Shown here: positions 1,052 to 57,507 of the stretch, piece by piece
How positions within the stretch are numbered: the stretch's first letter is position 1
Layout of the letters: every line of letters starts with the position of its first letter
Assembly (NCBI GenBank): GCA_047495785.1
Contig: JBLDXI010000030.1
Coordinates: forward strand, 124,001 to 188,000
Length of the DNA: 64,000 bases
Direction: 5' to 3'
Origin: Lepidodermella squamata
Lineage: Eukaryota > Animalia > Gastrotricha
The notes under the pieces: generated by a model
Database searches by the model: none
What the model was told of the DNA's origin: nothing
What the model saw: only the letters and a program-made list of their open reading frames with translations
Made by a program: the position numbers and the translations under genes

Positions 1052-3551
1052 ATGTTACCGGCAATCATTAATAAAGCTGCGTTAACTGCGTTAACGTTCG
1101 CCTGCTTCAACTTTGATTTGGGACAGACGTTGGACCTAGAACTATGCGTGTGGAACAAGACGACTGAATTCTCAACTGAAAGCCTAATTACTCCTATCGA
1201 CGGATGGGAGCAATTTAACTCAACGATGGAGACTAAATTCCCGCTCGGCACTATTGTTCATGTTACCTGCATCAACGATACAACGAAAAGTGCAACCATG
1301 TGCATCGACAGTGGTTGGTGGACTAAGAGAATTTCCAGATGTTCAGACTTCAGTAAGTTTTGTTTGAGACAAAGCATATTTAGTTCTAAATGTTCATTGT
1401 GCTCTTGTGATTGTGCTGAAAAGAGTAGACGGCCTTTCTGAACAATGCTATATTTTCGATGCTTTTAGAAACCGTCGGAAAAATGAGCAATCAAACTTGT
1501 TCCTGGCCTGGGTCACTTTCAAAGACACATGGTTACAACATTAGCATTGATTACGGATTAACTTGGTTGAGTACTACTAAACTGACTGGTATCAACAAGT
1601 TTGCAATGGTTAGAGATGAATGTCCGAACGGCGCTTACATACAAACGACGTGCATCAACGGGGCATTTAACCCAGATCCTAAAAAATATTCGTGTGGCGA
1701 GCCAGCCATTTCACCTCCATCCAAACTCGCAGCCTTCTGGCCTCTTGCAGCGGACACTAGGCTTCGAGCTCTGACACCTAATACCTCTGATTTCAAAGCG
1801 GTAAATGGGACAGCTTTATCTGCTGCATATGGACAATTTAAACAAAAAGGTTACACTATTGGCGGTTTGAAAAAGGCACTGTTGAAGGGGCCTGCAGTCA
1901 CCCAGCTTACCGGGAAATTCTGGAGTATCGCGGTCTTAGCTCGCGGTGCCTTTCAGCTTGACTTAATTGACAACAAAAGTGCACCTCTATATTCGATTTC
2001 AGTCAAAAACGGATGGGTGAACGTTATGCTTAATGGTGAAAAGATCATATTCGCGCCGCCTGTTGCTAGCGGTTTCGCTCTCTACTTGATCGGCTGCGAT
2101 GCCTCGAATGCACGGCTAGCTCTGTCAGTCAGTGGTGCAGACGTAGATTTTGAAAGCGATATTGTTGTTACAACGTCGGGCGCTGGAGATATCACAGATA
2201 CACCAGTTTCTGTCAACCTTAGTGGAGTGTTAGTCTTGAAAACTGATCTATCAACACGAATTGTTAATGTCTTTACAGGGCGGCTAATGATGGGGTCATT
2301 TCCTGTTTGATGTTGTTCAACTTTTATTATTCGGACCGGATTACGGCAGATGTGCTCATGCGGCATTGTAAGGCGGGTTCGTTGAGTTTTTTGTAGGTCC
2401 ATTCGATTGAAAATCGTTGTTTGTCAGCTACATCCTCACCAGATGTGACAATACCCAAGACCTGTCAAGCTTGCGTGTGGAACTACGACGAAAATCAATC
2501 GATTAATATTGCAAACTTCCGTATGCAATTGCCCCGTTTCCGTTTACAGTTACAGATTATTTGTTTAATGCATTGATAGACAAAGTTTACCGACGAGGTG
2601 CCGCGGCAATAACTGCCAACGGCCAGACTATTCGGTTGGCTGCGTTAGGGCAAAGTGGTGTGATTTGGTCACCCAACGTGAGGGCCTGAAATTACAATGC
2701 CGGAAAAGTATTTTCTTGCTTACTAACAGACTTTCAATCCATCCATCGACTTCCGAGTAGAATATCACCTTGCGTTGGATGATCAAAACGTGGAACTTCA
2801 GTTTTTGCTAGTCGCAAGCCAAAAGTCGCTGGATTTGAGCACTGGCAGCCATAAAACGGCAGCGTTCAATCTTAAGATGAATTCATTTGTTGGAATGATC
2901 ATCAGGCGCCAACCAAACGGGAATTTTCATATGAAATCCTCGGGCACTCCTGTTTCCGTTGATAAGGCCAAATGGGTCGACCTGAATATCAACAGCAATG
3001 GCTGCGGATTACTAGAAGGAATTATCTTCGAGAAAGTTGGGTCGAATTTGCATATTTTCTGTCAATCATCCAATTCTATTGACGAATTGACGAATGAACC
3101 CATTTCCATCGCAGCGTTCTCGAGCATCACTGAGAAGGTTAGGCTGGGGGTCTATGCCATGTACAACTACCACTCGTCGCCTGTTAGCACAATGGCCTAT
3201 CTGTACCAAATCAAATTCTATTCAAATAGTTTCAACATCACAACGCCGTCTGCTGGAAAATCAACTAGCTCGAAAACCACGGCAACAACGTCGACAGCGT
3301 CATCGTCAGCAGCTACTACCACTGAGCTGTCGAGTACCCAAACCAATATACCAATTTCCTTATCTTCTACGCTTCAAACCGGAGAAGATTCCACGACAAA
3401 GAACCCTAATCTGCCAAAAAACGACAAAAATAGCGGTAATGAAGTTCAATGTGTTCCTCCTCTCCTGGTGGTCTCTCTCATTTACTTCGTGAGAAAATGC
3501 CAAATAGTCGATGGTCATGACAGTTTTTTTCTGATCTTTCCGCCGCTTTAA
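1052..3551 (+). CDS. Lectin-mucin family copy 1: signal peptide, CCP-like Cys modules, LamG/ConA-like, L-type-lectin-like, short S/T stalk, hydrophobic tail; lacks SEA
   Basis: Six exons join in frame through GT-AG introns (first intron 1353-1468, phase 1). Motifs: KLAAFWPL and GAAAITANGQTIRLAALGQSGVIWSP-TFNPSIDFRVEY. Strong paralogy to 4266-7323. Confidence 0.8.
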
Positions 3552-4265
3552 GCATTCTCATAATATATGAGCCATGGGTGTGCTGTTCAAGATGCGAAAA
3601 ATTGCAATCAAATATTCTGCTTGATTCCCATGCAAAATTGATAGATAGAACTTAATTAGGACAATAAAGTCAAAAGATTACATGGCTTCCTGTATCTGGT
3701 AGAAACTACGGTTCATCTGCATCTCATATCTCATTTCAGCTTTCTCAATAAACAAAGAAATTCATGAATAGTCTACACTTCTTTTTCGGACACTTTTGAC
3801 GAGGCTAGAAAGTTCCAAACATCCTAGAATTTTCCAACCATCATGAATATGAAGCTGTATTCGCTGCTCGCTGCATTTGCTTACTGAATTCGATTGTGAA
3901 TGTGAAACGATGAATAATATGATGGGAAATATGCACGCTGAAAAATCTGGTCGTTATCAATTATTAAAATTTATGATATTTTTCAGGTATCCGTAAAAGC
4001 GGCCGCGCTATGACATTCCATGGAAGATGGTTGACTGTTGACTTTATCTTCTGCTGATTATAAAATGTTTTGTTCTTCTCATTTATGAAATGCGGCAGCG
4101 TAGGAAAACGGTTCCCTAGATTGCAGATCCACTGAACTTGATTGCGACATTTCGAAGCATAGTTGCCGCTTATGAGTAATTAAACAAGGAATCTAATGAT
4201 TTACTCAACTTTTTTCTTTCGAAAAAGCAGTTGCTTCATTTTCACGGAAAGCGCTAAATCCCGCT

Positions 4266-7200
4266 ATGCTGATGAGGCTGACAATAACATTAGCTATCGT
4301 AAGCTTCGGCGTTAAATTTGCAAAATCACTCGAACAATGCACGTGGAACCAAACCTCTACATCCATATTTACCACTGATAACTTGATTTCATACCTGGAT
4401 GGTTGGAAGACATTCACCTCGACGGCTGACGCTACTTACCCGTTCGGTACTATTGTCCACGTTACATGCAAAGCGGACAACACAATGAGCGCAACAATGT
4501 GCATAGACAGTGGATGGTGGACGAAAAAGATAAAGCTATGTTCAGATTTTAACGGTGAGCCTGTTCCTTTTAACTCATGAAAAACATTGATAGATGATCC
4601 CTAGATTCGGTGAAAAAAATGAGCAACCAAACCTGTAACTGGCCCACGGCACTCTTGAAAAATCATAATTACACTATCACGAATGATTTTGGAAAAACCT
4701 GGATGAATGCTAACGCAATTCTTAACAATATTGACAAGTTTGCAATGGTTAGGGACGAATGTCCGAATGGCGCTCAAATTCAATCCACGTGTATCAATGG
4801 GCTATTTCAGCCAGATCCTAAAGATTATCCTTGTGGTGAACCAACTTCTTCTCCCCCATCACATCTGGCAGCGTTCTGGCCATTAACTTCAGACACTCTT
4901 CTTCGTTCTCTGACGCCTGGAATGGTTGATTTTTCATCGTTAAATGGAGCAGCTCTCTCAACTCCTTATGCAAAATTCCAACAAATCGGCTTTAAGGTAG
5001 GCGGTTCGAACAAAGCTGCTCTTCAAACGAATGGGCCAGCGTTGTCGACTGGGAACGTTTGGAGTATCGCGATCTTAGCCCGTGGTGACTTTCAGGGTAA
5101 TTTGGTGAAGCTAACTGCTGGAGCATCGGCCAATATCATTAATGTCACCGCCGGGTCTGTAGTCGTTGATCTACAGGGCAACAAGATAAGCCACCCAGAT
5201 ACGGGCTTCGGCACTTTCGACGGATGGGTTCTTTACTTGATCGGCTGTGATGTCAAGCAAAGCTGGGTAAAGCTAACAGTCAGCGGGATGACTTACACCA
5301 CCGGCTATAGGAATACTGCTGGTGAAGGAGCTGTATCTAATGCCGTGATCACGCTCGGCGAATCGTAAGTTTTCACGAAATCGAGCTACGTTTTTAAGTC
5401 TTCCTTTAGAGCAACAAACGCTGGGGCCGTCGCTTGCCTGATGATATTCCACGCTTATTATTCTGACCAGAATACGGCCGACATTCTATTGCGGCATTGC
5501 AAATCATGTTAGTATTGTAGTTTTGTCTGTGGAATACTTAGATTTACAGGATGATTATGTTCTAGCAATTTCTTCGCCTGTGAAATCGACTACTAATGCA
5601 TGTCAAAACTGCGCCTGGACGTACGACGAAAACCTGTCTATAAATATCGCCAACTTCCGTAAAATCACACCATTTTTTTCATTTCCAATTAAAATTGTAA
5701 TTGGATTCAACGATAGACAAAGTTTACCGACGAGGTGCTGCGGCAATAACAGAAAACGGCATGACAATTCGATTGGCTGCGTTAGGGCAGACTGGGGTGG
5801 TTTGGTCGCCAGTTGTAAGTGGCAAGTGTCATAGCTGAGATGATGAAAGGATTAAATGCTTTCTTTCGTGTTAGACTTTCAGTCCATCCATCGATTTTCG
5901 AGTGGAGTACCACCTTGCATTCGATACCGCTAATGTGGAACTGAAATTTTGGTTTATCGGGAGTCAGACTTCTATGGATTTGAGCATTGGTTCTTTCGCA
6001 GCACCTGCGATCAATGGGAAGGCGGATTCGCTTATGGGATTGATGGTCAGACGCGCGAAAGACGGAAGCTATTTACTTAAAACATCAGGCACTCCAGCTT
6101 CAGTTAATGATATCCCAGGAGTTTCATTAGGGTCATCTGGTTGCAGCCCCGAAGCGCTTATTTTCGAGAAAGTTGGGCCGAATCTTAACGTTTTTTGTCA
6201 ATCCAGCAATTCTATAGTTAACGTTGGAGGAGCGTCTGTCGCCGCATTCTCGGGTATCACGGAAGAGGTTAGAATGGGAGTCTCTGCTACCTATTACTAC
6301 CACGCGTCGCCCGTTAACACAATGGCCTACCTGTACCAAGTCAAATTCTACACAAATGGATCCGTAACCACAACTTCATCAGTTGGCCCATCAACTACTA
6401 CAAGCTCGACAACTAGCTCAGTTAGTGCATCAACCAGTGGCGCAACAGCTAGCGCATCTACAGCTGCAACAATGTTCACAGCCGCAACAGTATCAACCGA
6501 AGCAACATCATCAGCAACAGAGACATCGTCCCCCGCTTTTACAGCTCCCATAACAGCTCCTATTACAGCTACGCAGTTAAGCAGCGAAGCTAATTCAAAT
6601 TCACTTTTCCCAACGTCTGCAACACAAATGGGGTCCAATTCTACTCCAACAACACAAGCGAATGCCTTAACCTTTGCGCAGCAAACAGAAGCGAGTACAT
6701 CTGCGTCAAAGTCGACAGTGCAATCCAACAACAAGCCTTATCAGCCTTCGACCTATTACGACTACTTGCTGACTTTGAATATGACGATTATGGGAGACTC
6801 TCTTTGGTTACCTGAGCCTAATATAACAATTAATGCCGATCCTTGGGATGTCAGCTTGGATCGACCTGATTCTACGAATTTCTTGGCCCTGTCTCAGTTC
6901 GTGAAACCACTAATCTGGCAGATTGCGAATGACACGGCTCAGTCGCTGAATTGCCAAGTGCTTTGGGTTAATATAACTGGCTTCCGAAAGGGCAGCATCA
7001 TCTCAGACTACATCGTTGCACTTCGCAGTCTGACACAGCTCACCGAGGGTGAGATAGCAGCTAAGGTGGCTGTTGCTACTGAAAAGCTGAAGAGCAAAGC
7101 TAACGCCAAGCTGTCGAATGGCTTGGAAGCTATGAAGTTCGGTGGAAATGATGTCCAGAAAATAACTGGCCCTTTGAAAGAGTCCACTTCGATTGCAGTC

Positions 7201-7323
7201 GCACCTCCAAAACCAGCCGGAGATGCCCCTAGCTCGGACAATAATAAAAACCGCGGAAATGAAGTTAAATATGCTTCTCATTTTCCTGTTATCTCTCTAC
7301 TCTGCTCGCTGCTGATTTTGTAG
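4266..7323 (+). CDS. Lectin-mucin-SEA family copy 2 (intact, predicted GPI-anchored)
   Basis: Introns 4555-4604, 5365-5409 and three more join in frame. Long S/T-rich stalk, SEA motif ITGFRKGSIISDY and a C-terminal hydrophobic tail with no cytoplasmic part. Confidence 0.85.
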
Positions 7324-7810
7324 ACTTCAACTTCTATATTCAGTTTTATAATTAAAGTTATGGGTATACTTGTACTGTTTCACTAAGCTGTCTAAATATC
7401 TGCTATGTTTTTTAAAATTAAGTGTTTGTTACAAAAAGAAGAAAGTTGTTACTCAAGGTTAGCACAATAAAAAGGATGAATAGGATGATCAGCCAGGGTC
7501 CGATAAGTTATGAGGTTTCTTCGACTGGAAAACATCCCAGCTTCAGAATTCTACTTCGCACACTTATTATCGATTTTCAGACTCGAATAACCTAGAACCT
7601 AGTATAATTTGAGTGGAAATGAGTACGCGAGGACAGAGTCGTAAAAAATTTGCGTTTTTCGTAACGCAATCCTCCCACGTGATACTACAGAGTGACCAAA
7701 ACGCGATACAGTTATTAGGACACCCGCACTTGTGTAAGCCTGATTTAAGCTAGTAATCTAGGCAAAATCTCAACCCTTTCATAAACATAGTCGGTTCATA
7801 AACATTCCCA

Positions 7811-8155
7811 ATGGCTCCAACTGCCCACAAAATATTTCTAGTCGTTCTCTTCTTGTTAGCAAAATATTCCGCCTCGCAAGTCTCGGATTTAGATCAGTTA
7901 AGTAAGTTTCAACCAAATTCTCCGCAGCATAGCTTTATTTCCAAATTTTCCTCAGAAAACGTGGTCGAGATATTGGTTCGAAACAATGATGCCGTAGGTC
8001 TGGCTAAACTGTACCGCCTTCAGCGAGAAGAGATGCAACGGCGTCGCATGGCTCGTTGCATAGAAATGCTAGGCTCGCGTGCTTTGTGTAACAACCAAGT
8101 TGGTTTCTACATCTGGGCTCAAATGCTTGCGAGGCAAATTCTCAGAGGCGAATGA
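7811..8155 (+). CDS. Small secreted protein, possible neuropeptide/prohormone precursor
   Basis: Single 114-aa ORF with a signal peptide (MAPTAHKIFLVVLFLLAKYSAS), a tribasic RRR site, then a C-terminal peptide with two Cys (CIEMLGSRALC). Confidence 0.6.
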   Translation: MAPTAHKIFLVVLFLLAKYSASQVSDLDQLSKFQPNSPQHSFISKFSSENVVEILVRNNDAVGLAKLYRLQREEMQRRRMARCIEMLGSRALCNNQVGFYIWAQMLARQILRGE

Positions 8156-8772: not shown

Positions 8773-11521
8773 ATGCTTAGGTTGGTTTTCGTGATTCTGA
8801 GTGTTAGCTTCTCCACGGCTGTTGAGCAGTGTCAATGGACAGCTGTAAATGATGCTCGAATGTCGGGCGTTTTCAGCCTGGCATTGCGCTACACCTACGT
8901 GCCCTTCAACATAGCTACTAATCGATCGTTCTACGTTGGAACTGAGATTAAACTGAGCTGCACCTCTTCGCCAAACTTCAGTGCACTAAAATGCATGGAC
9001 AATCGAAAGTGGTCCCGAAATACGCCATCTTGCAGTGAATTCAGTAAGAAAGTTTTGAATGTGATATGTATACTTAATAGGCATATTATATAAATTCTCA
9101 ATTAGGCAACGATGGGGTTTACAACAAAACTTGTAAGGGAGGTTTCCAGATGGTAACAGCTGGCAACCTCATCAGCTCCTCCAATGGCAAATGGAGCGGT
9201 ATATACCCAGCTCAGAATAACGACAAGCCGGCGTTGATGGTGTTTCGAACAATCTGTTACAATGGGTATTACAAAGAGATAACATGTTTAAACGGCAATT
9301 GGTTACCGAGCCTCGGAAATTCAACATGTGGCCAGCCGTTGACTAACAGCCCTTCATCACTTGTTGCTTTTAGGCCGCTCACCTACGATACGAACTTCAG
9401 TGCACCTATTGGAAAATTACTTGATTTGCAAGTTTCCGGGAGCATGAGCATTGAGACTCCAACTGGAGACTTTCCTATGACCGGGTTGATTCTTGGCACC
9501 ACAGATTCAGACTACGTTTATGGCAAACAATTGACTGGGGTTGGCGGGCAAAGCTGGTCGATGGGTTTCCTGTTTAAAACAAGCGCTTACAGTTGGTTGA
9601 TCAGCATCGATAATTCGGGGCTCAACAATGTCGCTGTACGATATGAAGCGAATGAGCTTATCATCCACCGATACAATGACATTTATAGAGCCCCGTTGAC
9701 GGATCCTAATACTTGGACGTATTGCTTGATAGCTATTGGTAACGCAAAACTAGCAGTTCTCAATATGGCTGGAGGCACTACTTCGTACACGACTTTCAGA
9801 TCTGTTGTCAGCGACTGGAGTTTCAATTCTTCGGCTACCTCAGATTTGTATATTGGCCATAGGTTTGACTATTGAATCCCCGTAAATTCTAGTTTCTAGT
9901 TTTTCTGTTTCAGGAACCAGGGCGAGTTCGGAAGCCCGAATGCGCGAATCGCATGCGTCAGTATCTTCAATACCGCGCACGTTGACGAGAAATCAGCTGA
10001 AATTTTGTATCGGCATTGCATGATGAGTGTGTTCTAAATATTTTTTGAATTTCATATCAAAACCATAATATATATTGCTATCCTCCAGCGATATCTACCG
10101 TCTCTCCAAAAATCAAAGCTGTCCCCGACACTGTGTGGCAATATGACGCGGCGAAATCATCAAGCATCGCCAACAATCGTGAGTTTGCGAGGCTTTCCCT
10201 TCAAAAAATAATTGAACTTACTAACGAAAGATAAACTCTATCTCCGCGGAGCTGCGACACATACTGAGGCTGGACTCTCTATGAGGCTGGCATTTGTCGG
10301 TCAACAAGGCTCCGTCTGGTCCTACAGAGTATGTAGAGATTCAGTGAATCATCAATTAAATAAGCGTTTTTGCAGTTCATGAATTCAAAAGAAGATTGGC
10401 GCATCGAATTTCAAGTGTTTGCGGACGGGGATGGTGGCACTGTCGAGTTTTACGTAGTGGCGGACAAATTAACCGCTGAACTCGATGTTGGAGATTTCAA
10501 AAATAGACCGTTAAACGTGAATGATACAAATTTCTTCGGGATATCATTGCGGTATGATCTCAGTACGAAGCAAATGACCTTCAACTCCCGAGATCCCGTG
10601 AGCAATGCGAAAATTGCTCTGGAAACATCCGCGGCACTAGCATTCAAGCCTGAAGTTGTAATCATCGAAAAAGCTGGCAACTCCTTCTACGTTTTCGTGC
10701 AAAGAGCTGACAGAGCTGTGCGGGTCATTCAAAGAAACGTGACCGATTTTAGCTGCATCACCCAATACCTGCGATATGGCATTGCGGCTGATTTACCATA
10801 CACCCTTGCCGCTGATATTCCGCCGATATACTTCTACCAGGCCAAGTTTTATATGAGTAATGGAACCTCGGTTTGTACCCCGGCTTCTACAGCCTCACCA
10901 TCAGCAAAAACCTCGTTGCTATCTGCAGCGGTGTCCACTACAGCGGATCCTTACCCAACCTTGCCTTTCAAATACGAGCTCTTTATGAATCTGAGCATAA
11001 CTGGGGACAATTTGACGATTTCTGATATTTGGCTCGATGTTACTAGTGATCCTTGGGATCCGTCCTTGAATGACCCGAGTTCAGCCGTATTCCAAGCTCT
11101 TGCAACTTACATTTCACCCGGTATCCAAAATATTATGAATCAAGTGGCTACAGCTAATGGCTGGGCTATAACTACCTTCACGATTGTAGGATTCAGGAAA
11201 GGAAGCATTATAGCGGATTATATCGTTGCTCTGAGGAGTTTGACTCAGCTGACTGAAGATCAAATAGCGGCCAAAGTTGAAGTAGCTGTTAACAAGCTGA
11301 AAGAAAGCATGGTTGATATGGCAGAAGGGCTTCCTACCACTCGTTTGGGAGAGGTCTCTTTAGTTCGAGTGAATGGGCCAACGCCTCTCCCACCATCTGT
11401 TCAGCCGCCGCTTGATGCTAAAACTGAACCAAGCAAACCCAAAGTTCAAACGCCGAACTCTGCTTGTGCATTGAATCAAACAGTTGCTTGTTTATTCGTG
11501 ATAACATTCCTTTCCCTCTAA
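8773..11521 (+). CDS. Lectin-mucin-SEA family copy 3 (apparently intact)
   Basis: Same six-exon layout and intron phases. Motifs SSLVAFRPL, RGAATHTEAGLSMRLAFVGQQGSVW, SEA VGFRKGSIIADY, and a hydrophobic C-terminus. Confidence 0.85.
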
Positions 11522-14218: not shown

Positions 14219-17200
14219 TTAATGCTGTTGAATCATTTCTTCGAGTTCTTGAAATGATGGACGATCTTTCGCCAGCTCTCGCCAGCATTTCTTCATGACT
14301 TTCTCGTAAAACAGTTCGGAACATTTCGGCGGCTTTTCCAGCACTTCACCAGTCGTGATTCGGACAACAACTGCAGAAGTAGCCAATCCTCCATACGGAA
14401 TCGATTTACATCCTATTGCGCGAGCAAAGTTTGAAGTTTATTATGGTGGAAATCGATTAAATTTACCGGTAAATATCTCCCACATAGTTACACCGAAACA
14501 CCAAACATCGCTTTTTGGTCCAAATTTCATTTGCTCGATAGATTCGGGAGGGTACCATCGAATCGGTATCAGCAAATTACCGCCACCGTTGTGCAGCTTG
14601 TAATAAACATCATCGCTGTCGAGAATGCGAGACATTCCAAAGTCACTTATTTTCAAAACAAAATCATCTGAGACCAGAACGTTCCTACAGGCGAGGTCGC
14701 GATGCAGGCAGTTTTTCGAGGACAGGTAGACCATTCCTTGGCAAATTTGGAAGCAGTAGTCGATTAGTGTGTTTTCATCTGATTCGTCATCTGATTTCTT
14801 CAAAAATTGGTCCAGGCTGCCTTTAGCCATAAATGGAGCGACGATGCATGGTTGGCCGTTGAGAGCCGCTACTCCGATCAATGCTAGGACGTTACGGTGG
14901 GAAAATCCTTTCATGATAAGCGCCTCTTTCATGAAATCTGTTAATTTTGTTACAGAACCTGGCTTGACGCTCTTGATCGCGATCACAATTTCACTGTCAT
15001 CAGTGTCTCTGAGGCTGGCACGATGAACTGATCCGAACTGCCCCTCTCCGACGTAATTTTGCAGCTGGATCCTGCCCGGATCGATGCTGATAGGTTGGAA
15101 CTGCTCCATTAGTTGTTCTGCCTCGGGCACGTCCTTCAAAAGGCTAGCTAAATCAGCAATTGCTTCAATGTAGTTTGAAGCAGCAGCAGTGTTGCGAGAA
15201 AATGGCATGACGATGAGCCTTTTCACAAACTTCCTGGTTCGCCTTCTGTATAACACCACACTTATCACGATGATTATCCCCATCATTGCCAGAACGCCTA
15301 GAATAATTGCGACTAGTGTGACTATTTTGACAGAAAAAATAGGAATTTCTCGAAGAAGCTTAGATTCAAGAAAACCTGTGTAATTCTGCTGATCAAATAT
15401 CGGCGTTGTTGTTCCAAATTCCGGCAGCTCCTCTTCATTAACATCTCTTCCAATCTCAGGGTCATTTTTCAGTTTATAAATGTAAGGACAGGGCTGGCTG
15501 GAAGGGACAGAAAGACATCCAGCTGTTGTTTTGATTCTATCACTCAATGAATAGACGTTCCTAAACTTGATAGGAAGTCCAGTTTCGCAGTTTGGGTTGA
15601 GCTCTTTGAGGAAGATTCCAACCTATGTTAAATCAAATGCATTAATTATTCTGGAAGTTCTAGTACTTACCAGGACGAATCTTTTTCCGAGCTGTGTTAC
15701 ATTGTCGCTATCAATTAAAAGCAGCAAAGCAGAGCCAGGTAATACATCACAAGAGGAGATATTTGTAAATTTAGTTTTAAAGCGAAGCACCGATCCAATT
15801 GTTGGTTTCGATTCATCCGTAGTTATAGGCGAACAGTTGGTTTGTGGTAGCAATAAACCTGAAATGTAGCCATATTCAGCGTCACGCCTGGGTAGCCCGA
15901 CAATATAAGCGTGGTCGTTCCATAGGACCTTTTCATCGCAGCAAGTAGGTAGGCAAATGTTATTTGACTTGGCGAAAGGTTTCTCGAAACGAGCAATGGT
16001 GATTCCGCTAAAGGTTTCGGATGACTTTGAGGAATTTAGCATTTTTGAGCAGGAAGAACTCGTAATCAGAACTCTATCAGATAGCAAAGTTCCTACGCAA
16101 GAGGTTGAATAGACGATGAATGGAAATTCTCCAGTTCTCGCATCGGTTGGCTGTGTTACGGGAGCAGCGACGACTGGCCGATAATTCATTAGGGTTGTGC
16201 CACAAGCCGTTCGAGACACGATGTTGCGCATAGCATCTTGAACAGCAAACAATTCGTCCCGAGTCAGCTTGCAGTCGTGGATAGTCAAACCTGCGATTGC
16301 ATTATGCGCCACTGTCCAGTTTGAGGAGAATCCGTTGGATGAGCCCACGGTAAATCCTCTTACCACAGACCACCATTTCGCAGCTGAAGTATCGTCAGGC
16401 GATTGTTCCACTGTAAACACTGATGTGAAATTGTTGAAAACTGATAACCACGGTGTATTTTGCTCAGCGGAAAAAACAATTCCAACAAAGGTCCATTCCG
16501 ATACAGGGAAAATTCCAGGTGCGTTTATAACAATACCAGGTAATTTGATGACTAATATATCGGTATGCTGATATCCGAAACTAATCGAATTCGGGTGGAA
16601 TTCGATTATACCGCACTTTTCCGAGAAAAATTTGCTTCTTTGGTAGAAGAAGGTAAAAGTAAAACCCGAAGAAGAACGCATGGGCATCTTGAAATCTTCC
16701 ACTTCGAAAACCTCTGTATTGTACCAGACGCCAGCGTACCAGAATATATTTTCGCCTTTGGGTGGATTTTTATTATTCAGAGCGATGCTTGCCAGGCGGC
16801 GAGAGCCAAAATCATAGAACCCATGAAAATAAGTTATAGGCCAGAAGCCAACTAACGAGAAGGACCTTGGCATAGCCACAGCTGTAAATTAGACGAGGGT
16901 TAATTACGCGGTGGATGCGGTGGATACTTTCTGAACACACCTTGAGTCGCAGATGCAAGAGAGATGTTGTAATTTGCTATCAAAAATCGGACTTCCTCCA
17001 AGACAGCCTCTTCGCTAAAATTGCCATCGAAAGGATACGCTCGCTCGATAATGCTGGCAAACGATGCAAGTATACTGTTGCCAATGCCCTTTTCTAACTT
17101 TGATATAAGCGAGTTCGGTGTTCCATGAGAAGCGGCTTGCAGATTTTCGTTTAGCTGTATGATCCAAACATGGCAGATTTCAAACACGGCTAGCGCATGT

Positions 17201-17878
17201 TATACTACGACTCGATATATTACCGCATTTTCCGAAATAGCTTCATGGAGCATTGTAATTTATATCCTAAGAGGAGCGGTCTATGGTCTATTTTATTCCG
17301 GCCCTTCCGGAATTCGGTGTTTGCCCTAATCTTGTTAGATTCATTGTCTTACCTGTTCTGCGATCACCCGACTGGTTGTCACGTTCTGTATGCTATTTTG
17401 ACCAGCGAAATCTTGTGACCAGTCGAAGCCATGGTATACCATAGTTCCAACAATCCGAACTAGAAAAGCAAAGATTTTGTTAATTCAAGATGGCAAATTA
17501 GGTATCAGGTTCCCACAACCTATTTGCTTCACCAGGAATTCATCGTTTAGGCCGCGACAGGCGTCGACAATGGAGGCCAATTGATTGATGTTGAGGGGAA
17601 AGTTGTAGCAAACAAAGCATGAAAAGCCTTCTGTTATCTTGTGACCAGTCGAAGCCATGGTATACCATAGTTCCAACAATCCGAACTAGAAAAGCAAAGA
17701 TTTTGTTAATTCAAGATGGCAAATTAGGTATCAGGTTCCCACAACCTATTTGCTTCACCAGGAATTCATCGTTTAGGCCGCGACAGGCGTCGACAATGGA
17801 GGCCAATTGATTGATGTTGAGGGGAAAGTTGTAGCAAACAAAGCATGAAAAGCCTTCTGTTATGTCGACATCAGCGAC
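14219..17878 (-). CDS. Receptor tyrosine kinase (MET/RON-like kinase) with SEA-like, LamG-like and inactive trypsin-like ectodomain; 5' end upstream and uncertain
   Basis: Kinase motifs GEGQFGSV, IAIK, HRDLACRN, DFGMSR, YY, PIRWYPPES, SDVWCFGV. The last exon ends CWRELAKDRPSFQELEEMIQQH* (14219). TM segment IVTLVAIILGVLAMMGIIIVISVVLY then RRR. Upstream exons splice in frame via GT-AG introns. Confidence 0.85.
17410..17861. repeat. Perfect 226-bp tandem duplication inside the RTK gene
   Basis: 17410-17635 and 17636-17861 appear identical. Each unit carries the same 60-bp intron (17460-17519) plus flanking exon parts. Confidence 0.95.
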
Positions 17879-18622: not shown

Positions 18623-19696
18623 TCACGCTGCCGAATCAGATCTTTTTATCGAATCAATGTTCTTTAAAAGGAGTTCCCAGTGAACTGTCAAAGGCCGTTG
18701 GCCGACAGTAATATTTTCTACAAGGCCAGAGAAACTTTTCTTCGGGTTCAAACTAGACCAGATGAATAGAGCACCCTTGGTTCCATAACCCGAAAGGTAA
18801 AATAAGCTCATTCTCAATTGTGCAACTTTTCCTGGCTTTCAAATGTACTAATGCAGATTGGGCTGTATCCCGCATAGAAAGAGATTAACCAATACCCAAT
18901 ACCATAGGGTTTCTGAAGGTCTCATTCCTGGTTGGAAGCAAGGTGTACTGCTGGCATGCTTTCTCGTGTAATTAAGACTAACCTTTTATGTAATCCTACA
19001 ACATACCAGGTCAAAATCATAGACACCCACATCTTTGTAACCAATTTCAAGGTTGTACGCTCTTGAAAGCTTCGCTGGAGGATATCCCGGCTCGTTCAAC
19101 GCCTGCACACCAACCGTGGCTAGCTTTGAGAGTTCATAATCGGGCTCCATGCCCATGAACACTGAAAAGTGAGATTTGTTGTAGCTGACTAAAGCCAGAA
19201 AGTGCCATTTCGCCGGCTGCCATGCATTATCGATATTTTTCGAGAAATGTTGCCAGTCGTGCTTTGTGCCGATAACCACACTGAAATTGGCGACTTGAAA
19301 CTTGACGTACAATGTGAAATCGTTATAAACCCCCAGCTTGACGATGCCTCGGGGTTCAGTGATTATCGCCGGCGAGGAGGCATACGTGAAGAAGAACAAG
19401 GTCAGCGTAAGCTGGCGTATTTTGAAGAAGCGATTGTTCAATTCATACGTAGACAACATACTTTCCCAAGTGTTATAGGCACTTTCGAGGTAGCCAAACG
19501 GACCTGCTTGTTCCATAACTCGAGCTGACGGCGCGTGTTCTTCATCAATAACGAAAGACTTCGACACATTGGCAATATTTCGCGTGCCATATTGACGATT
19601 GTAAGGCACTAGGAGTAACGGTGACCCGAAGCTTGAAACCCTGGCGATGATCGCCAATATTAGGATCTTCAATGTTATGAAAAATCGCTTCGTCAT
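18623..19696 (-). CDS. Signal peptide + LamG/ConA-like domain; either the 5' exons of the RTK or a separate secreted protein
   Basis: MTKRFFITLKILILAIIARVSS signal. LTLTLFF and WQPAKWHFLALVS are LamG-like motifs. Donor GTATGT at 19006. The splice path to the 17878 exon was not resolved. Confidence 0.6.
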
Positions 19697-20655: not shown

Positions 20656-23423
20656 ATGATTTGTTATATGTGCTTGCTACTCATCGCTAGCTCATCCTCC
20701 GCTGTTGAGCTATGCCAATGGCCAGCGCTGGATGAGCCACTGATGTCAGGTGTCTACAGCAGAGATTTACGGTGCAACAGTAAGCCATTCAATGTGGCCA
20801 GCAACACGTCGTTCTACGTCGGAATTGAGATTTAGCTTAGCTGCTCTTCTTCGCCTAGCACAAGTGCTCTAAGATGCATGGATAACCGGAAATGGTCTCA
20901 AAAAGTACCTGTTTGCAGCGAATTCAGTAAAAACTTTCGAATAGTCATTCATCCTACTATTTTCTGAGAGTTTAGAGAACGTTGGAGTGTTTAATGCTAG
21001 CTGTAGAGGGGGTGGTCAGGCTAATACAACTGGCAATCTAGTCAGTTCCTCCCCAGGTACGTGGAGTGGTGTGTACCCGGCTCAGAATACCAACAAGCCT
21101 CACTTAACCTTGCTTCGCCCTTTTTGCAAGAATGGCTTCTACAGAGAGCTGACTTGCTTGAACGGGGAATGGCTACCAGGCCTTAGAAACTCAACCTGTG
21201 GCGAGCAATCAGTGTACAGCCCAGCGTCAATCTCCGGGTATTGGCCGCTTACCTACGATACTAACTTCAGTACACCTTCTGGAGATTCACTCGACTTGAA
21301 CGTTTCAGGAAGCATGAGCATTGAAGCTCCAACCGGGAACTTCCCTATGACCGGGCTGGTTCTGAGTGACAAAGAATCAGACTACGTCTATGCAAGTAAA
21401 ATTGGTGGGATCGGCGGCAGGAACTGGTCGATGGGCTTCCTCTTCAAAGCAACATGGCCCGGTTGGCTTATTAGTATCGACAATTCAGGGCTTAACAATG
21501 TTGCTGTCAGATATGATTCCAATCAGCTCATTATCCACCGATACAATGACTTCTATAGTGTCCCGCTAAAGGAACCTAATTCTTGGACGTTTTGCCTGCT
21601 AGTTGTAGTCAGCAAAAAACTAGCAGTTCTCAACATGGCAGGCGGAACTGTATCATACACAGCCTTTAGCTCTGTTGTCAGCGACTGGAGCCTCAACTCT
21701 TCTCTTACTTCCGATATTTACATTGGTCATAGGTTAGGGCTTCTGAATCTAACGCTGGGAAACAATTTTTGTTCAAATCAGGAACACAGGTGAGACTGGA
21801 AGTCCAAACGCAAGAATTGCGTGTCTCAATTTCTTCAACATTGCGCACATTGACGAAAAATCGGCCGAACTGCTGTATCAGCAATGCATGATGAGTGAGA
21901 GGCTACATTTTTTGTTATTGATTATGCATCTTTTCCTATTTCTCAGCGATATCTTCCGTGTCACCATTAATGAAAGGTATTCAAAGCGCTGCTTGGCGAT
22001 ATGATGCTACTAGATCGATTAGCATTTCAAACAGCCGTGAGTTTCATTTTTAATTGAATTTTGACATTTATTTGGATTGCATTTATAACGAAAGATAAAC
22101 TCTACCTTCGAGGGGCTGCAACGCAAACTGAAGCGGGGTTATCGATTAGACTCGCATTTGTAGGCCAACAAGGCTCGGCCTGGGCATACAAGGTATATTT
22201 ATCTTCGGATTTTCTAACCTTGCTTTCATGATAGCGAGTTTTTAAAGCTGCTCGACTCAACGAAAGATTGGCGCATTGAATTTCTCGTCTACGTCGAAGG
22301 AAGCGCCGGTTCTATTGAATTTTTCGTAGTCGCCGAGAATGCGACCCTTGATCTCGCGAATGGTGATTTCAAAAACAAGCCCTTCAATGTTGACGAAAGG
22401 AATTTCTTCGGAATATCTCTGCGATTTGACCTGAGCTCGAAGCAAATGGTTCTCTACGCCCGCGACCCAGCTACGAATTCTAAAACCGTCATAGCTACGT
22501 CTACGGCGTTTCAATTCAAGCCTGAAGTTGTAATCATTGAAAAAGCTGGAAATATGTTCTTCATTTTCATTCAACGAGCCGACAATGCTGTGCCGATCCT
22601 TCAAACTTACGTTCCTGATTTCAACTGTATCCCCTCGAGACTGCGATATGGCGTTGCAGCGGATTTACCAATCAATCTTGCAGATGACACTCCTCCAATT
22701 TACTTTTATCGATCCAAGTATTACTACAGCGGTGCCAATTCGAAATGCAACGCGACGTTGACTATAAATTCCGTAACGTCAACGCCGACTGTTCGGACGA
22801 ATACAGCGGATCCTTACCCAGCTTTGCCGTTCAAATACGAGCTCTTTATGAATCTGAGCATAACTGGGGACAATTTGACGATACCTGATATTTGGCTCGA
22901 TGTTACTAGTGATCCTTGGGATCCGTCCTTGAATGATCCGAATTCAGCTGTTTTCCAAGCTCTTGCAGCTTACATATCACCCGGCATCCAAAAGATTATG
23001 AATCAAGCCGCTTCAGCTAACGGCTGGGCTATAACAAGTGTCACGATCGTTCGATTCAGGAAGGGTAGTATAATAGCGGATTATATCGTCGTTCTGAGGA
23101 GTTTGACTCAACTAACGGAAGAGCAAATAGCTGACAAAGTTCAAATTGCTGTTATCAGGCTGAAAGAGAAAGCCGAAGAGTTATTACCAGGTCTCCGAAT
23201 ATCACGTCTAGGACAGGTTAATCTCGTTCGTATGGATGGGCCAACACCTGCGCCACCTGTCATTTCTTCTCCTGATTCTAGGAAAGAGACGAAAAAAGCT
23301 CAAGGGAGCACTTCTAACGCCAACTGCGGATATAAAAATCATTCCCCAGTTCTATCGCTGCTAAAGCTTCTTTTGTTCGGACTCAGAATCCTGGCTCCTG
23401 GCGATATGATGACTCTAAGTTAA
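20656..23423 (+). pseudogene. Lectin-mucin-SEA family copy 4, closest to copy 3; premature TAG in exon 1
   Basis: ATG at 20656. In-frame TAG at 20833-20835 where copy 3 has AAA (GTEIK). The remaining exons look open, including SEA VRFRKGSIIADY. Confidence 0.8.
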
Positions 23424-30153: not shown

Positions 30154-33100
30154 ATGCCGAATTCGATGTGCGATTTACGCTTAACGTTTTTTTTGTTTTA
30201 CATTGCAACTGCTGGAGCTATTGAGGAATGCAAATGGAATACATCAACTTGCCAGACGAGCAGCGGGTTTTCGGCAAATGGAGCCTCTCAAGGTTTATCA
30301 TTTCTATCGAGCACCCCCGCGATTTTCAAGCTAGGGGAAGAATTATCTTTCATTTACGGAACAACCGTGAAGGTATTGTGCTCCAGGAGTTCTAACAAAT
30401 TCGATTTGTTGGGTCGTTGCAGCGACAACGGTTGGTGGACAAACACCATTGACTGCAAAGGTAACTACTTATTTTTCGATTGTTCAAGGCGATTATTTTA
30501 AATTATTTGCAAGCTGTTTATAATCAACCCACTGGAGACTGTGCGTGGAATCAAACCTTGAAATTTTACGGCTACATGATCAGCACGAACTCGGAAAAGG
30601 TCTGGACATCTTTTGACACCACGATGCCAGATAAATCTTTACCTGATCATACTGTCGTGAGAGTTTTCATCTGCCCAGATGGATCTTACCGCCAGACGAC
30701 GTGCCTCAACGGAAAATATCAACCCGACCCAACAGGATTCCGTTGCGGCAAAATTGAAGCATTTAGCGAGTCTAAACTTGTCGCTTATTGGCCGCTTGGT
30801 TGGGATACGCGGTTGCTGCCCCTGACCGCTGGCACGCCGAGCTTCAAGACGGTTGGGAGTGCAGCTTTCGTAAATCCATCGGTGAAAATCACAGAATTAG
30901 CTCACTCAGGGTATAAAGTTGGATCTACTACGTTCAAATCCCCAAAATACCTCAGCGCGACTGGGCTCACTGGAGTTGGAGGCCCTGTTTGGTCATTCTG
31001 TCTCTATTTTCAGCCGACAGACAATGGAGAATTGATGGCAATAGAATCTAGTGGTGGGCAGAGAATTCAAATATTCAGAAATGGCAATCAATTTGGTGCA
31101 GCAAGTGGGCCCGATAAAGCTTACGCCGATCATTTGAAATATGTCGCAAATGATTGGGTATTCCTTCTGGTCACTGTTGAGAATTCGGCGATTACAATCA
31201 CTGCTCTTACAACCGGGGGCTCGACGACCTACAGATCCTACAAAACAGCCTTCTCTGGAATTTCGCCGGAACATCAGCTGGACGTTTATCTTGGAAAAGG
31301 GTAGGTAACATCGCGTTTGATCATCGAATTTCAAACCTTTTTCCTGCAGAACTTCGTCGAATGCGGGAAGCGATTTTATTACGTCTTGCGTCATGTTTTT
31401 CAACTCGAACATGTCCAACTTTGCCGAAGTTCTATATAAGCATTGCATCAATGGTAATGAAGATATTTGATTGTTGAGATTCACTTTACCGTAATTGATT
31501 TCAGCTACATTCTACCCAGCTGGTACGTTAACAGGCTGCTCGAGTTGTGCTTGGACCTACGACACCTATCGATCGCTTCACATAGCCAATACAAGTCGGC
31601 CTTTCGTCGATTTTTTCGTTTTCCTATGTTACTCATCTTTTCTAGATAAGCTTTTCCGCCGTGGAGCAGCAGTGCTTACAGAGAATGGCCTAACAACCCG
31701 GCTTGCATTTTTGAATCAACAAGGCGCTGTCTGGTTGTTTGAAGTAAATTAGGATTGTTATTCGTATCTACATATAGTTACACCTTCAGTTTTCCAGCCA
31801 ATTAATTCCGCTACCCAGAATTGGCGCGTTGAATTTCATTTTATTGGTGATAAAGGATTGGGCGATTATGAGTTCTATGTCACGCCGTCGACAACAAATT
31901 CGTTTCACCCTGTTGATAGCCCAGTTGGCTTGAACCGATCGAGTTTTTGCGGGTTGCTTGTTCGGTATTCTACGCCATCCAAATTCGCTCTGTATGGAAA
32001 TCCCAGTCTGATAGATATCCGAACTGCCCTCCCGGCACCACTGACTGAGAAAACCAGTGCTACCTGGCAGTATCCTGTAATGGTTGCCATTGATAAGATC
32101 GGCGATGTCTTCTACGTCCATTCGAGGAGTGGGATGACTTTTGAAACCGTGCTAAAGGCAAGCTTCCCCACCTTCTCAAAAATAACCTCTCCCCTCTACA
32201 TCGGTATGGCCGCGATCTGGGGGCACTACAGCCAAACGGCTCCATTGTTTCCCTACCTGTATCAAATCAAATTCTACACCGATGGTCCTGTCGTGACAAC
32301 AAGCACCTCTACAACTTCAACGACTTCACACTCAACGGCCTCAAGTTCGTCCACAACATCGGTTACTTCGGTATCGACTGCATCGCAAAGCATTCCAGTG
32401 ACGACTTCTACAGAGGAGACTCCGATTGTTACCACAACTAATTCTCCTGACACGGATCCTACCGAGGGCTCCACAGATTCCTCAGGAATCGGGACAGGCG
32501 AGACAACCTCGCAGCAGCCTACAGATTTACCTACCACCACTGATTTTGAGACTACATCCGAAGTCACGCCAACGACTGAGCCTATGTCTGTAAACACCGA
32601 TACTTCTACTTCTACTGCTACAGCTGCTACTACAACTAATACAACTACTACTGCTACCAATAATCTAACTTCAATCACTTCTATAAGTTCAACAACTGCT
32701 ACTAAGAAAGGGGTTACCACTACAGCCAGTTTCAACTACGACTTGGACATGTCTCTCAAAGTTTACGGCGACAACATCACAATACCTGGGCAAAATCTCA
32801 CGGTGTCTTCAGAGCCATGGGATCCTAAGCTCAACCAGTCTGGTTCTGATGTATTCAAAGCTATGGCGAACTACATGCAGCCTCTCCTCGAAGATCTTAC
32901 CAACAAATCAGCTAAAGATTTGGGCGGAGAGGTGCAATATGTCAAAATCACTGGTTTCAGAAAGGGCAGCATAATATCTGACTACATTGTAGCTCTAAGA
33001 AGTTTGACGCAGCTAACAGAGAAGGAAATAGCTGAAAAGGTTAGCGCTGCAACGGAGAAACTGAAAACAAATGCAGTGCAGCTGTTAAACGGCCTCAGTG

Positions 33101-33306
33101 CTTCTCGATTAGGCGGATCAACCCTGGTGAAAGCATCGGGACCTTTGATCGGGAGCACAGTCGCAAATCTGAGATCGCCTGTTAACATTGCGCCTTCGAA
33201 GAGCGATAAAGCGAACCCGCCATCGAAAGAAACGTCATCATCAGGAACTAATCGTGGCCTAACTGGTTTCAGTCTCGTGTTAGCTTTGATTCCCATCTTT
33301 TTCTAG
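30154..33306 (+). CDS. Lectin-mucin-SEA family copy 5 (intact, long Thr-rich stalk)
   Basis: Six exons in frame. Motifs SKLVAYWPL, RRGAAVLTENGLTTRLAFLNQQGAVW, ITGFRKGSIISDY, and tail GLTGFSLVLALIPIFF*. Confidence 0.85.
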
Positions 33307-40792: not shown

Positions 40793-43700
40793 ATGGCTAC
40801 TGCCATGAATGGTTTTCGCATAGCGTTACTGCTGTTTTACCGTTCACCTTCAGGTGCTGTTGAGGAATGTAAATGGAATACATCGACCTACACATCGAAC
40901 CTTGTATTTTACGCAAGTGAAGGCTCCCAAGGGTTATCATATCTATCGAAAGAATCTGGATTCAAGCCAGGAGACAATTTAACCTTCATCTACGGAACAA
41001 CAGTGAAGCTAGTGTGTTCGAAGGCGGCTGTAAAACTGACTTTGCTGGGTCGCTGCAGCGATAACGGTTGGTGGACAAACAATCTTGACTGCAAAGGTAA
41101 CAAATTTGAATTTTGCAGTTTTTCGAGGGGTTTATTGTTTCTTGTTTGCAAGATGTTTTAAATCAACCCAGTGCACAGTGTGACTGGAACCAAACCTTGA
41201 AATTTGATGGCTACATGATTAGCACGAACTCAGAGAAGGTCTGGACATCCTTTGACACCACGATGCCTGGTACATCTTCACCAGAGCATACTGTCGTGAG
41301 AGTTTTTATCTGCCCAGACGGATCTTACCGACAGACGACGTGCCTCAACGGAAAATATCTTCCCGATCCAACGGGGTTCCTTTGCGGCAAAATCGAGGCA
41401 TTTAGCGAGTCGAAACTTGTCGCCTATTGGCCGCTTAGCTGGGATACGCAATTGTTGCCCCTGACTGCTGGCACGCCGAGCTTCACGACGGTTGGGGATG
41501 CAGCTTTCACGAAAACATCGGTGACAGCAAACGAATTGGCCCACTCAGGGTATAAAGTTGGATCTAGTGCGCTCCAATCCCCAAAATACCTCAGCGCGAC
41601 TGGGCTCACTGGGGTGGGAGGCCCTGTTTGGTCTTTATGTCTCTATTTTCAGTCGTTGAACAATAGAGAACTGATGGAAATAGAATCTAGTGCTGGGCAG
41701 ATAATTCAAATTTACAAGAACGGAAATCAATTTGGTGCATCAAGTTCGTCCGATAAAGTCTACGCCCAACATTTGAAATATACGGCGAATGATTGGGTAT
41801 TTCTACTGGTCACTGTTGAGAACTCGGCGATTACAGTCACTGCTCGAACAACGGGAGGCTCGACGACCTACACATATCCTACAAAACATCCTTCTCTGGA
41901 ATTTTGCCGGAACACCAGCTGAAAGTTTATCTCGGAAAAACGTAAGTAAAATCGCTGTTGTTCATCGAATTTTCTCCTAAACATTTTCTCATAGATCTTC
42001 TTCTTTTGCGGGAGGCGATTTTATTACGTCTTGTGTCATGTTTTTTAACTCGAACATGTCCAGCTATTCCGAAGTTCTGTATAAGCATTGCATGAATGGT
42101 AATGAGGAGATTTGATTGCCGAGCTTCAATTTACTTTATTGATTCCAGCTACATCCTACCCAGCTGGTGAGTTAACATACTGCCCGTCATGCGTTTGGAC
42201 CTACGACACCTATCGTTCGCTCCATATAGCCAATGCGAGTCAGCCTTTTGTCTTCGACTTTTCTTTTCCTTACATCTCTTGTTTAGATAAGCATTTCCGC
42301 CGTGGATCTGCAGTTCTCACAGAGAATGGTTTAACAACCCGGCTTGCATTTTTGAATCAACAAGGCGCTGTCTGGTTGTTTGAAGTAAATTAGGATTGGA
42401 AATTCGTATCTGCATGTCGTTAAACACTCACTTTTCCAGCCAATTAGTTCCGCTACCAAGAATTGGCGCGTTGAATTTCATTTTATTGGGAATAAATCAT
42501 TCGGCGACTATGAGTTCTACGTCACACCGTCGACAACTAAATCCTTTCACCCTGTTGATAGCCCAGTTGGCTTGAACCGATCGAGCTTTAGCGGGTTGCT
42601 TGTTCGATATTCTGCACCGTCTCAATTCAAACTTTATATAAGTACCAGTCTTATAGACATTCGAAGTACCTTCCCGAAACAATTGGCTGAGAAAACCAGT
42701 TCAACGTCACAGTATCCTGTGATGGTTGCCTTAGAAAAAGTAGGCGATATCTTCTGCGTCTATTCAAGAAGCGGGGTCACTTCTGAGAACGTGATAAAGG
42801 CAGGCTTTTCTAACTTCACAGCGATAACCTCGCCCCTTTACATCGGTGTGGCTGCGATCTGGCAGCACTACGCCGAGCCAGCTATATTGTTTCCTTACCT
42901 GTATCAAATTAAATTCTACACCGATGGCCTTGTTGTGACAACAAGCACCTCTACAACTTCAACGACGTCACGCACAACGACCTCAAGTTCATCCACAACA
43001 ACAACAACTACTTCGGTATCGACGTCATCGCAAAGCAGTCCAGTGACGACAACTTCTAAAGGGGAGAGTCCAATCGTTACCACAACTAATTTTCCTGACA
43101 CGGTTTCAACCGAGGGCTCCACAGATTTGTCAGGAAGTCGGACGAGCGAGACAACTTCTCAGCAGCCAACATATTTTACTACAACTACTGATGTCGAGGC
43201 TACATCCGAAGTCACGAAAACGGCTGAGCCTATGACTGTTAACACCGATACTACCGATACTACTACTTCTACTACTACAACTGCTGCTACAACAACTAGA
43301 GATGCTAGCACGACTACCAATAACACAACATCGATCGCATCTATCAGTTCAACAGCTGCTAGTAAGAAAGGAATTACTATTTCGCCCAGTTTCAACTACG
43401 ACTTGGACATGTCTCTCAAAATTTACGGTGACAACATCACAATACCCGGGCAGAATCTCACTGTGTCTTCAGAGCCGTGGGACTCTAAGCTTGACCAGAC
43501 CGATTCTGAAGTATTCAAAGCTATGGCAAACTATATGCAGCCTCTTCTTGAGGATCTTACCAACAAATCAGCAAAAGACTTGGGCGGAGAGGTGCAATAT
43601 GTTAAAATCACTGGTTTCAGAAAGGGCAGCATAATATCGGACTACATTGTAGCTCTAAGAAGTTTGACGCAACTCACCGAGAAAGAAATAGCTGAAAAAG

Positions 43701-43966
43701 TCAGTGCTGCAACGGAGAAACTTAAGAAAAATGCGGTGCAACTGCTGAATGGTCTCAGTTCTTCTAGATTAGCCGGATCAACCCTGGTCAAAGCATCGGG
43801 ACCTTTGATCGGCAGCACAGTCGCAAATCTGAGATCGCCTGTTAACATTGCGCCTTCGAAGAGCGAGAAAGCGAACCCGCCATCGAAAGAACCGCCATCC
43901 TCAGGAACTAATCGTGGCCTAACTGGTTTTAGCCTCGTGCTAGCTTTAATTCCCATCTTTTTCTAG
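40793..43966 (+). pseudogene. Lectin-mucin-SEA family copy 6, closest to copy 5; 2-bp frameshift in exon 2
   Basis: acc tac aca TA tcc tac (~41875) versus copy 5 acc tac aga tcc tac gives a stop at 41920-41922. Downstream exons stay open, including SEA and tail. Confidence 0.75.

Positions 43967-46624: not shown

Positions 46625-57507
<10,883 letters not shown>

Follow-up and report, generated by a model that had tools for sequence, protein, structure and literature searches.

HGF and MSP are S1 pseudoproteases that activate the receptors MET and RON. Elsewhere, S1 folds with a dead catalytic triad have been reused for binding or scaffolding, as in the arthropod serine protease homologues (SPHs) of the masquerade and clip-SPH type, haptoglobin, azurocidin, and protein Z. 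Receptor tyrosine kinases (RTKs), for their part, have undergone lineage-specific radiations with shuffled ectodomains in choanoflagellates, sponges, nematodes (KIN-16), and other lineages (PMC8662651). Here, we analyzed a 64,000-nucleotide stretch of DNA from Lepidodermella squamata (the window), in which a minus-strand, intron-containing animal gene can be read at 14219-17878. We think it probable, though far from certain, that this gene encodes a lineage-specific type I RTK whose ectodomain was taken whole from a rare secreted family combining LamG domains with a trypsin-derived pseudoprotease. An earlier note on this DNA had proposed a lineage-specific RTK with a dead trypsin-derived module in its ectodomain, a proposal that holds at the level of sequence ancestry. 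It does not hold for the architecture given there, SEA, LamG, SPH, transmembrane (TM) helix, and tyrosine kinase: no SEA domain was found, there are probably two LamG domains, and the trypsin-like module is shortened and its fold unproven.

The kinase half lies on a long uninterrupted exon (exon 2) and on the last exon. Exon 2 matches Pfam PK_Tyr_Ser-Thr (PF07714) at 3.3e-66, and the last exon matches PK_Tyr at 2.1e-9 over profile positions 203-257. All kinase motifs are intact, namely GEGQFG, AIK, HRDLACRN, DFG, the YY activation loop, PIRWYPPE, SDVWCFG, and CW..RPSF. A single hydrophobic helix (residues 503-528, 15325..15248; mean hydropathy 3.1) is followed by a basic stop-transfer stretch, RRRTRK, and the NxS/T sequons are distributed asymmetrically around it, with seven outside and none inside. 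The protein ends in ...RPSFQELEEMIQQH, ~10 residues past the kinase, and has no tail. Judged by its kinase domain and single predicted TM helix, the product is a type I RTK, in agreement with the earlier description of a TM helix, a kinase with intact catalytic motifs, and no C-terminal docking tail.

The description of the receptor as MET-like, on the other hand, is not specific. When the kinase was compared with PDB by phmmer, JAK scored 170 bits, MET 164, and EphA2 160; MET is therefore the best human receptor match, 4 bits above Eph and below a JAK. The top row of that search, labeled EGFR, consists of two matched stretches and is not comparable per domain. The gene also lacks the docking tail, and Pfam found no Sema, PSI, or IPT domain on any ectodomain exon. 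Among the matches listed from 5.8 billion clusters, the best kinases were chelicerate 'Ror-like' proteins at 36-38% identity and ENA proteins at ~41%, and no listed kinase was closer than that. A Trypsin domain was present in 0 of the 120 kinase matches listed.

To identify relatives of the ectodomain, an exhaustive HMMER (phmmer) scan of 1.84 billion representative proteins was used, and it returned only three. Two of them, P0001 (E 1.3e-9, 517 aa) and P0003 (E 1.1e-4), come from metagenome assemblies and carry, by Pfam, Laminin_G_3 followed by Trypsin (PF00089; 6.6e-24 and 1.5e-19, respectively). The third, P0002 (E 2.6e-7), is an ostracod protein of true trypsin repeats. None of the three has a kinase domain. 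The matches to P0001 and to the trypsin repeats of P0002 make the homology to bona fide S1 domains significant. The window ectodomain is collinear with P0001 residues 24 to 474 at 23% identity, with the large exon aligned end to end, and the first ~60 residues of the trypsin-like domain score 30 bits against the family profile. Compared with PDB by phmmer, the protease-like part gave five matches, all of them trypsins, at E ~0.4 and over the first ~45 residues only, which is not significant alone. Taken at the level of sequence, the trypsin ancestry of the pseudoprotease is real and is carried mainly by its first ~60 residues.

The LamG-like domain preceding the protease-like part, already recognized in the earlier reading, is likewise supported. 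Tested with a profile built from relatives that have a PF13385 match, this domain (LamG2) scores 55.7 bits, a value reached by none of 300 shuffles, and its Atlas score is 0.75. Searches directed at further members of the family yielded little. In 5.8 billion clusters, the relatives of P0001 were its tandem paralogue and one true protease only; a JGI metagenome scan with the family alignment gave 600 pattern matches, of which 0 were confirmed; and tblastn of the protein found no paralogue within the window.

The state of the pseudoprotease module was assessed from an L-INS-i alignment with its relatives. His57 is replaced by Ser in the window gene, as it is in P0001, its paralogue P0127, and the relative on contig L003; in the true protease P0128, His is still present. 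Asp102 is replaced by Gly; the relatives have Asn at this position and P0128 has Asp, which supports the equivalence of GITIARF with DIALL put forward earlier. Ser195 is replaced by Pro, with Glu in the relatives, and Gly193 and Asp194 are replaced by Val and Leu. The proposed loss of all three catalytic residues is thus confirmed, and because the triad reads Ser, Gly, and Pro, with Gly193 and Asp194 also replaced, the pseudoprotease is predicted to be non-catalytic. No R-IVGG activation site is present: the aligned stretch, ...VTQPTDARTGEFPF, contains no basic residue and no IVGG. Cys42, 58, 122, 168, 191, and 220 are kept together with the propeptide Cys, whereas Cys182 is absent, and the recognizable trypsin motifs all stand in their original order.

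The secreted LamG_3 + Trypsin pseudoproteases are known from metagenome assemblies only (L001 and L003). On L001, the regions 1356-2921 and 3343-4896 encode the tandem paralogues P0127 and P0001, which are 69% identical and both carry His57 to Ser, Asp102 to Asn, and Ser195 to Glu. On L003, automatic calls split one gene at 5237-7849; its parts join without a stop over GT-AG introns of 134 and 55 bp. The joined protein of 806 residues, which contains P0003, comprises a signal peptide, LamG1, an S/T-rich linker, LamG2, and the pseudoprotease.

These secreted proteins share with the window gene a LamG domain followed by an S1-derived domain in collinear alignment, the linker motif ...QD.C/M R....CG, the His57 to Ser replacement, and a Cys-x-x-P...C-P/S tail; L003 additionally shares an intron position and phase. 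They differ in ending directly behind the last cysteine; within the reach of the contigs, neither a TM helix nor a kinase follows. Pfam Trypsin recognizes their S1 domain, which is complete, but not the shortened one of the window gene, and identity to the window ectodomain is only ~23-27%. Since the secreted relatives already carry His57 to Ser, the module would have been dead before it joined the kinase.

The joining of ectodomain and kinase depends on the 48-bp intron, which the earlier note had placed correctly. Its sequence (15670..15623) is read directly, and an in-frame TAG at its end means that it must be spliced out. Exon 2 is open in one frame from its first base through the helix to the kinase. 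Ahead of the helix it contains neither a Met nor a signal peptide, so that it cannot begin a gene and must be joined by splicing to the exon that ends 48 bp upstream. That exon is the only one in reach, and it is in phase and has canonical splice sites. Joining 16879..15671, 15622..14467, and 14412..14219 gives an open frame of 852 residues, which includes two stop-free exons of 403 and 385 codons.

At precisely the position that aligns with the 48-bp intron, the L003 gene is also interrupted in phase 0, by an intron of 55 bp (exon ends ...HLIQ versus ...RFVL). Beyond the intron, the tails align by L-INS-i as A-C-x-[LS]-[VP]-P/G...C-P/S. The L003 protein stops one residue past the last cysteine and P0001 five residues past it, while the window frame continues into a stalk of ~50 residues, the helix, and the kinase. 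As a sequence comparison, this tail alignment is suggestive of a fusion but is not proof of one.

In the preferred reading, a secreted LamG-pseudoprotease binder, already non-catalytic through His57 to Ser, would have been joined to a stalk-TM-kinase cassette, with the reading frame continuing past the last cysteine into the stalk, the TM helix, and an intact kinase. An extracellular ligand, plausibly a glycan or a protein, would be bound by the LamG domain(s), with the eroded pseudoprotease contributing as a scaffold or as a further binding surface. Dimerization driven by the ligand would then allow the paired kinases to phosphorylate each other in trans on the YY activation loop. As the protein has no docking tail, the signal would leave through the juxtamembrane tyrosine and the tyrosines of the kinase domain. 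Expression, folding of the pseudoprotease, ligand, and signaling are points that we only infer. The fuller proposal holds that the receptor is expressed and functional and that an entire secreted binder, consisting of LamG and an S1 pseudoprotease that is still folded, is wired directly to a tyrosine kinase; we advance it tentatively and would ourselves bet against it.

Toward its 5' end, the gene extends beyond the limit of 17878 given earlier, which is an internal splice acceptor and not the gene start. Exons X, Y, and Z, which encode ~150 residues, connect to the large exon (from 16881) in a single frame without stops. Further upstream, ~1.8 kb from exon X, the ATG at 19696 is the only one with a signal-like hydrophobic start. 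The candidate exon that it opens scores 21.3 bits against the LamG profile of the relatives, with 0 of 300 shuffles as high; it is assigned Laminin_G_3 at 0.96 in Atlas features and matches LamG1 of L003 by BLASTP at E 4e-5, with no direct Pfam match. Because the L003 relative is one protein with a signal peptide, LamG1, linker, LamG2, and pseudoprotease, the gene probably starts at 19696, and this start would bring in a signal peptide and one more LamG domain. The gene would thus probably contain two LamG domains, the additional one lying on this candidate exon.

Across exons X and Y, the region contains a perfect tandem duplication. Its unit of 226 bp, a length not divisible by three, runs from the last part of exon X through a 60-bp intron (17745..17686) into the first part of exon Y. 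Reading the duplicated 166-nt piece at 17685..17520 as an exon brings a frameshift and then a stop; skipping it leaves the frame open. The duplication either arose very recently or is an assembly artefact, and splicing can remove it. At the junction of exons X and Y (start of exon Y, 17459..17440), the sequence ...KQIV-RIVGT... resembles the S1 activation motif R-IVGG. The likeness is probably a coincidence, as the junction precedes LamG2 and lies ~120 residues ahead of the pseudoprotease.

Exon Z corresponds to the stretch previously described as SEA-like. It has no Pfam match at E<=1, and its best Atlas score is 0.60, with no family. A SEA domain in this exon was rejected: a profile built on five of the window's own SEA domains gave it a score of ~1 bit. 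In the window, SEA domains are carried by five large plus-strand open reading frames (ORFs) at 5902-7323, 10370-11521, 22446-23423, 31858-33306, and 42572-43966. Four of the ORFs match at Pfam E 3e-6 to 5e-9, and 5902-7323 reaches only 0.006, below the Pfam cut-off. A nearly identical stretch, GFRKGSII.DYIVALRSLTQLTE, is common to all five, and they look like members of one family of surface proteins with a SEA domain, dispersed or in tandem, that takes up much of the window.

Table 1. Features of the receptor kinase gene and its upstream region, in window coordinates.
Feature	Position	Strand	Remarks
Candidate first exon	19007..19696	-	ATG, signal peptide (MTKRFFITLKILILAIIARVSS), first LamG-like domain; donor GTATGT at 19006
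Exon X	17746..17877	-	acceptor AG ends at 17878; chain X-Y-Z-E1 stop-free in one frame
Perfect tandem duplication	17410..17863	.	226-bp unit, 2.0 copies, 100% identical; Tandem Repeats Finder score 908
Exon Y	17353..17459	-	donor GTAAGA; frame-consistent join with X and Z
Exon Z	16941..17154	-	'SEA-like' stretch of the earlier note; then 59-bp intron 16940..16882
Large ectodomain exon	15671..16881	-	LamG2 ~16870..16214 and N-terminal three quarters of pseudoprotease, from Cys at 16204
48-bp phase-0 intron	15623..15670	-	GTAAGT...ATAG, read directly from sequence
Uninterrupted exon 2	14467..15622	-	pseudoprotease C-terminus 15622..15485, stalk, TM helix, juxtamembrane region, most of kinase
Kinase part on exon 2	15070..14468	-	
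54-bp intron	14413..14466	-	GTAAAT...ATAG, within kinase domain; join restores WEIFTG-CKSIPY
Last exon	14219..14412	-	kinase C-lobe end (CWRELAKDRPSF), stop TAA at 14221..14219, read directly

Several observations weigh against the reading of the gene as an RTK with an ectodomain inherited whole from the secreted family. The gene model and its splicing are predicted from genomic DNA alone. The 5' end at 19696 is probably right but stands as a candidate, as does its link to exon X across 19007 to 17877, and the 226-bp duplication, if genuine and not skipped, would break the frame. The window gene itself has no Pfam Trypsin or Laminin_G match. Against the family profile, the stretch after Cys58 reaches 8.8 bits, with 1 of 300 shuffles higher, and the start of exon 2 reaches 2.1 bits against the relatives' tail profile, with 34 of 1000 shuffles as good. 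Between Cys58 and the Asp102 region, ~35-40 residues are missing, a deletion that should remove two N-terminal barrel strands. Finally, AlphaFold gave a predicted local distance difference test score (pLDDT) of 41.7 for the large ectodomain exon (E1) with an 11-sequence alignment and of 39.2 for the protease-like part alone with nine sequences, both inputs lacking the last ~45 residues past the intron.

These results also bear on what the earlier note saw and expected. Of the 'whole trypsin pattern' that it had seen, the N-terminal motifs hold, but a segment is absent and the C-terminal half matches weakly. Of the Pfam outcome that it expected, Trypsin together with PK_Tyr, the kinase was found, but no Trypsin match, or match to any other family, was obtained at E<=1 for the 403-residue ectodomain exon, which covers aa 1-403 and stops ~45 residues short of the SPH C-terminus. 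The trypsin fold that it expected from structure prediction was not recovered in the two AlphaFold runs. Foldseek on the first model returned only concanavalin A-like jelly rolls at TM-scores of 0.25-0.29, among them a sialidase carbohydrate-binding module and the lectin-like subdomain found in the binding domains of clostridial neurotoxins; these matches read as driven by the LamG part and nothing more. The trypsin fold of the module is thus unconfirmed by prediction, with AlphaFold handicapped by the shortened input and the few sequences available.

The deletion, which covers the strands between Cys58 and the Asp102 region, would also fit a different picture, in which the pseudoprotease stretch is a degenerate, cysteine-stapled spacer without a trypsin fold and the LamG domain(s) alone bind the ligand of a functional receptor. 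So would the missing Pfam match on the ectodomain exon, the score after Cys58, and a pLDDT below 50 over the whole stretch in both AlphaFold runs. However, seven cysteines still occupy canonical S1 positions, among them the 191/220 pair, which has one member on either side of the intron, and the order of all recognizable motifs is retained. The AlphaFold failure is of little weight here, given truncated inputs and alignments of 9-11 sequences. We regard a mere spacer as a serious possibility, but as one that probably does not apply.

A decaying or non-functional copy is a further alternative, and one that we consider improbable. It would account for the frame-shifting duplication, for the distance between exon X and the only signal peptide, with no exon chain made out by eye between them, and for an eroded S1 module with a shortened protease-like domain. 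Yet more than 850 stop-free codons lie downstream, and every kinase motif is intact. The three introns that interrupt the LamG2-SPH-kinase part have GT-AG borders and keep the frame, as do the two proposed toward the 5' end; the sequons are asymmetric, and a duplication with 100% identity is very recent or an assembly artefact and can be removed by splicing.

The function suggested earlier, in which the dead protease acts as a tethered ligand in cis, as in HGF and MET, or as a decoy sensing proteases or protease inhibitors, is very improbable: it draws on analogy with HGF and MSP and on the small margin by which MET is the best human receptor match, but the ectodomain offers no Sema, PSI, or IPT domain to a cis ligand, the kinase is not specifically MET, the absence of an activation cleavage site means that there is no Ile16 N-terminus, the replacement of Gly193, Asp194, and Ser195 leaves neither the canonical-inhibitor cleft nor a surface like the 'active-site region' of HGF-beta conserved, and the module was already dead when inherited from the secreted relatives. 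Binding of canonical inhibitors by the module is likewise unlikely, because the S1 cleft elements are destroyed (Gly193 to Val, Asp194 to Leu, Ser195 to Pro) and no Ile16 N-terminus would form.

Other features of the window include, on the minus strand, a ligand-binding exon of a Cys-loop ligand-gated channel at 44851-45441 (Neur_chan_LBD, 2.7e-11) and an ORF of EGF repeats at 53043-53654 (PEAR1/teneurin-type EGF, 3e-13) that is part of another extracellular protein gene. A Cys-loop ligand-binding exon is also found at 3301-3561 of L003, the contig of a secreted relative. These exons point to an animal with neurons; the genome is compact, with introns of 48-60 bp and Cys-loop receptor genes.

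If the fuller proposal of a functional, expressed receptor with a folded pseudoprotease is true, this would be the first RTK class with a trypsin-fold ectodomain, and an example of a soluble recognition factor becoming a signaling receptor by C-terminal read-on into a TM-kinase cassette. RTKs diversify by ectodomain swapping, but the donor can rarely be named. Here, a donor family is visible: it shares the dead His57 and the tail with the window gene and, in one member, the intron as well, so that the step from soluble binder to receptor could be reconstructed. Should the protein be expressed and folded, an S1-derived module would be added to the known ectodomain repertoire of receptor kinases. 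It would also provide a handle on the function of the unstudied secreted family, as both should bind the same thing. Should the protease-like part be a mere relic, the gene would encode a LamG-bearing receptor kinase of the ordinary lineage-specific sort.

Lineage-specific receptor kinases that have borrowed their ectodomains are in themselves well known (PMC8662651), and the window gene resembles the described radiations in combining a conserved TM-kinase cassette with an ectodomain borrowed from an unrelated extracellular family. It differs in the source of that ectodomain: we found no S1-derived ectodomain class described, and PMC8662651 mentions neither trypsin nor protease. Nor was a receptor kinase with an S1 ectodomain found described in a full-text literature search, which was not exhaustive and did not cover domain-architecture databases.

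Compared with the other reused S1 folds, the arthropod SPHs and the vertebrate binding pseudoproteases are soluble and mostly full-length S1 proteins, many of which need cleavage, and none of them is known as a kinase ectodomain. HGF and MSP with their receptors come closer, in that an S1 pseudoprotease takes part in RTK signaling and the kinase carries YY in its activation loop. MET and RON, however, have a Sema-PSI-IPT ectodomain and a docking tail, whereas the window receptor has no Sema domain, no tail, and no activation site. In those systems, the pseudoprotease is a separate ligand activated by cleavage, while here it is part of the receptor itself.

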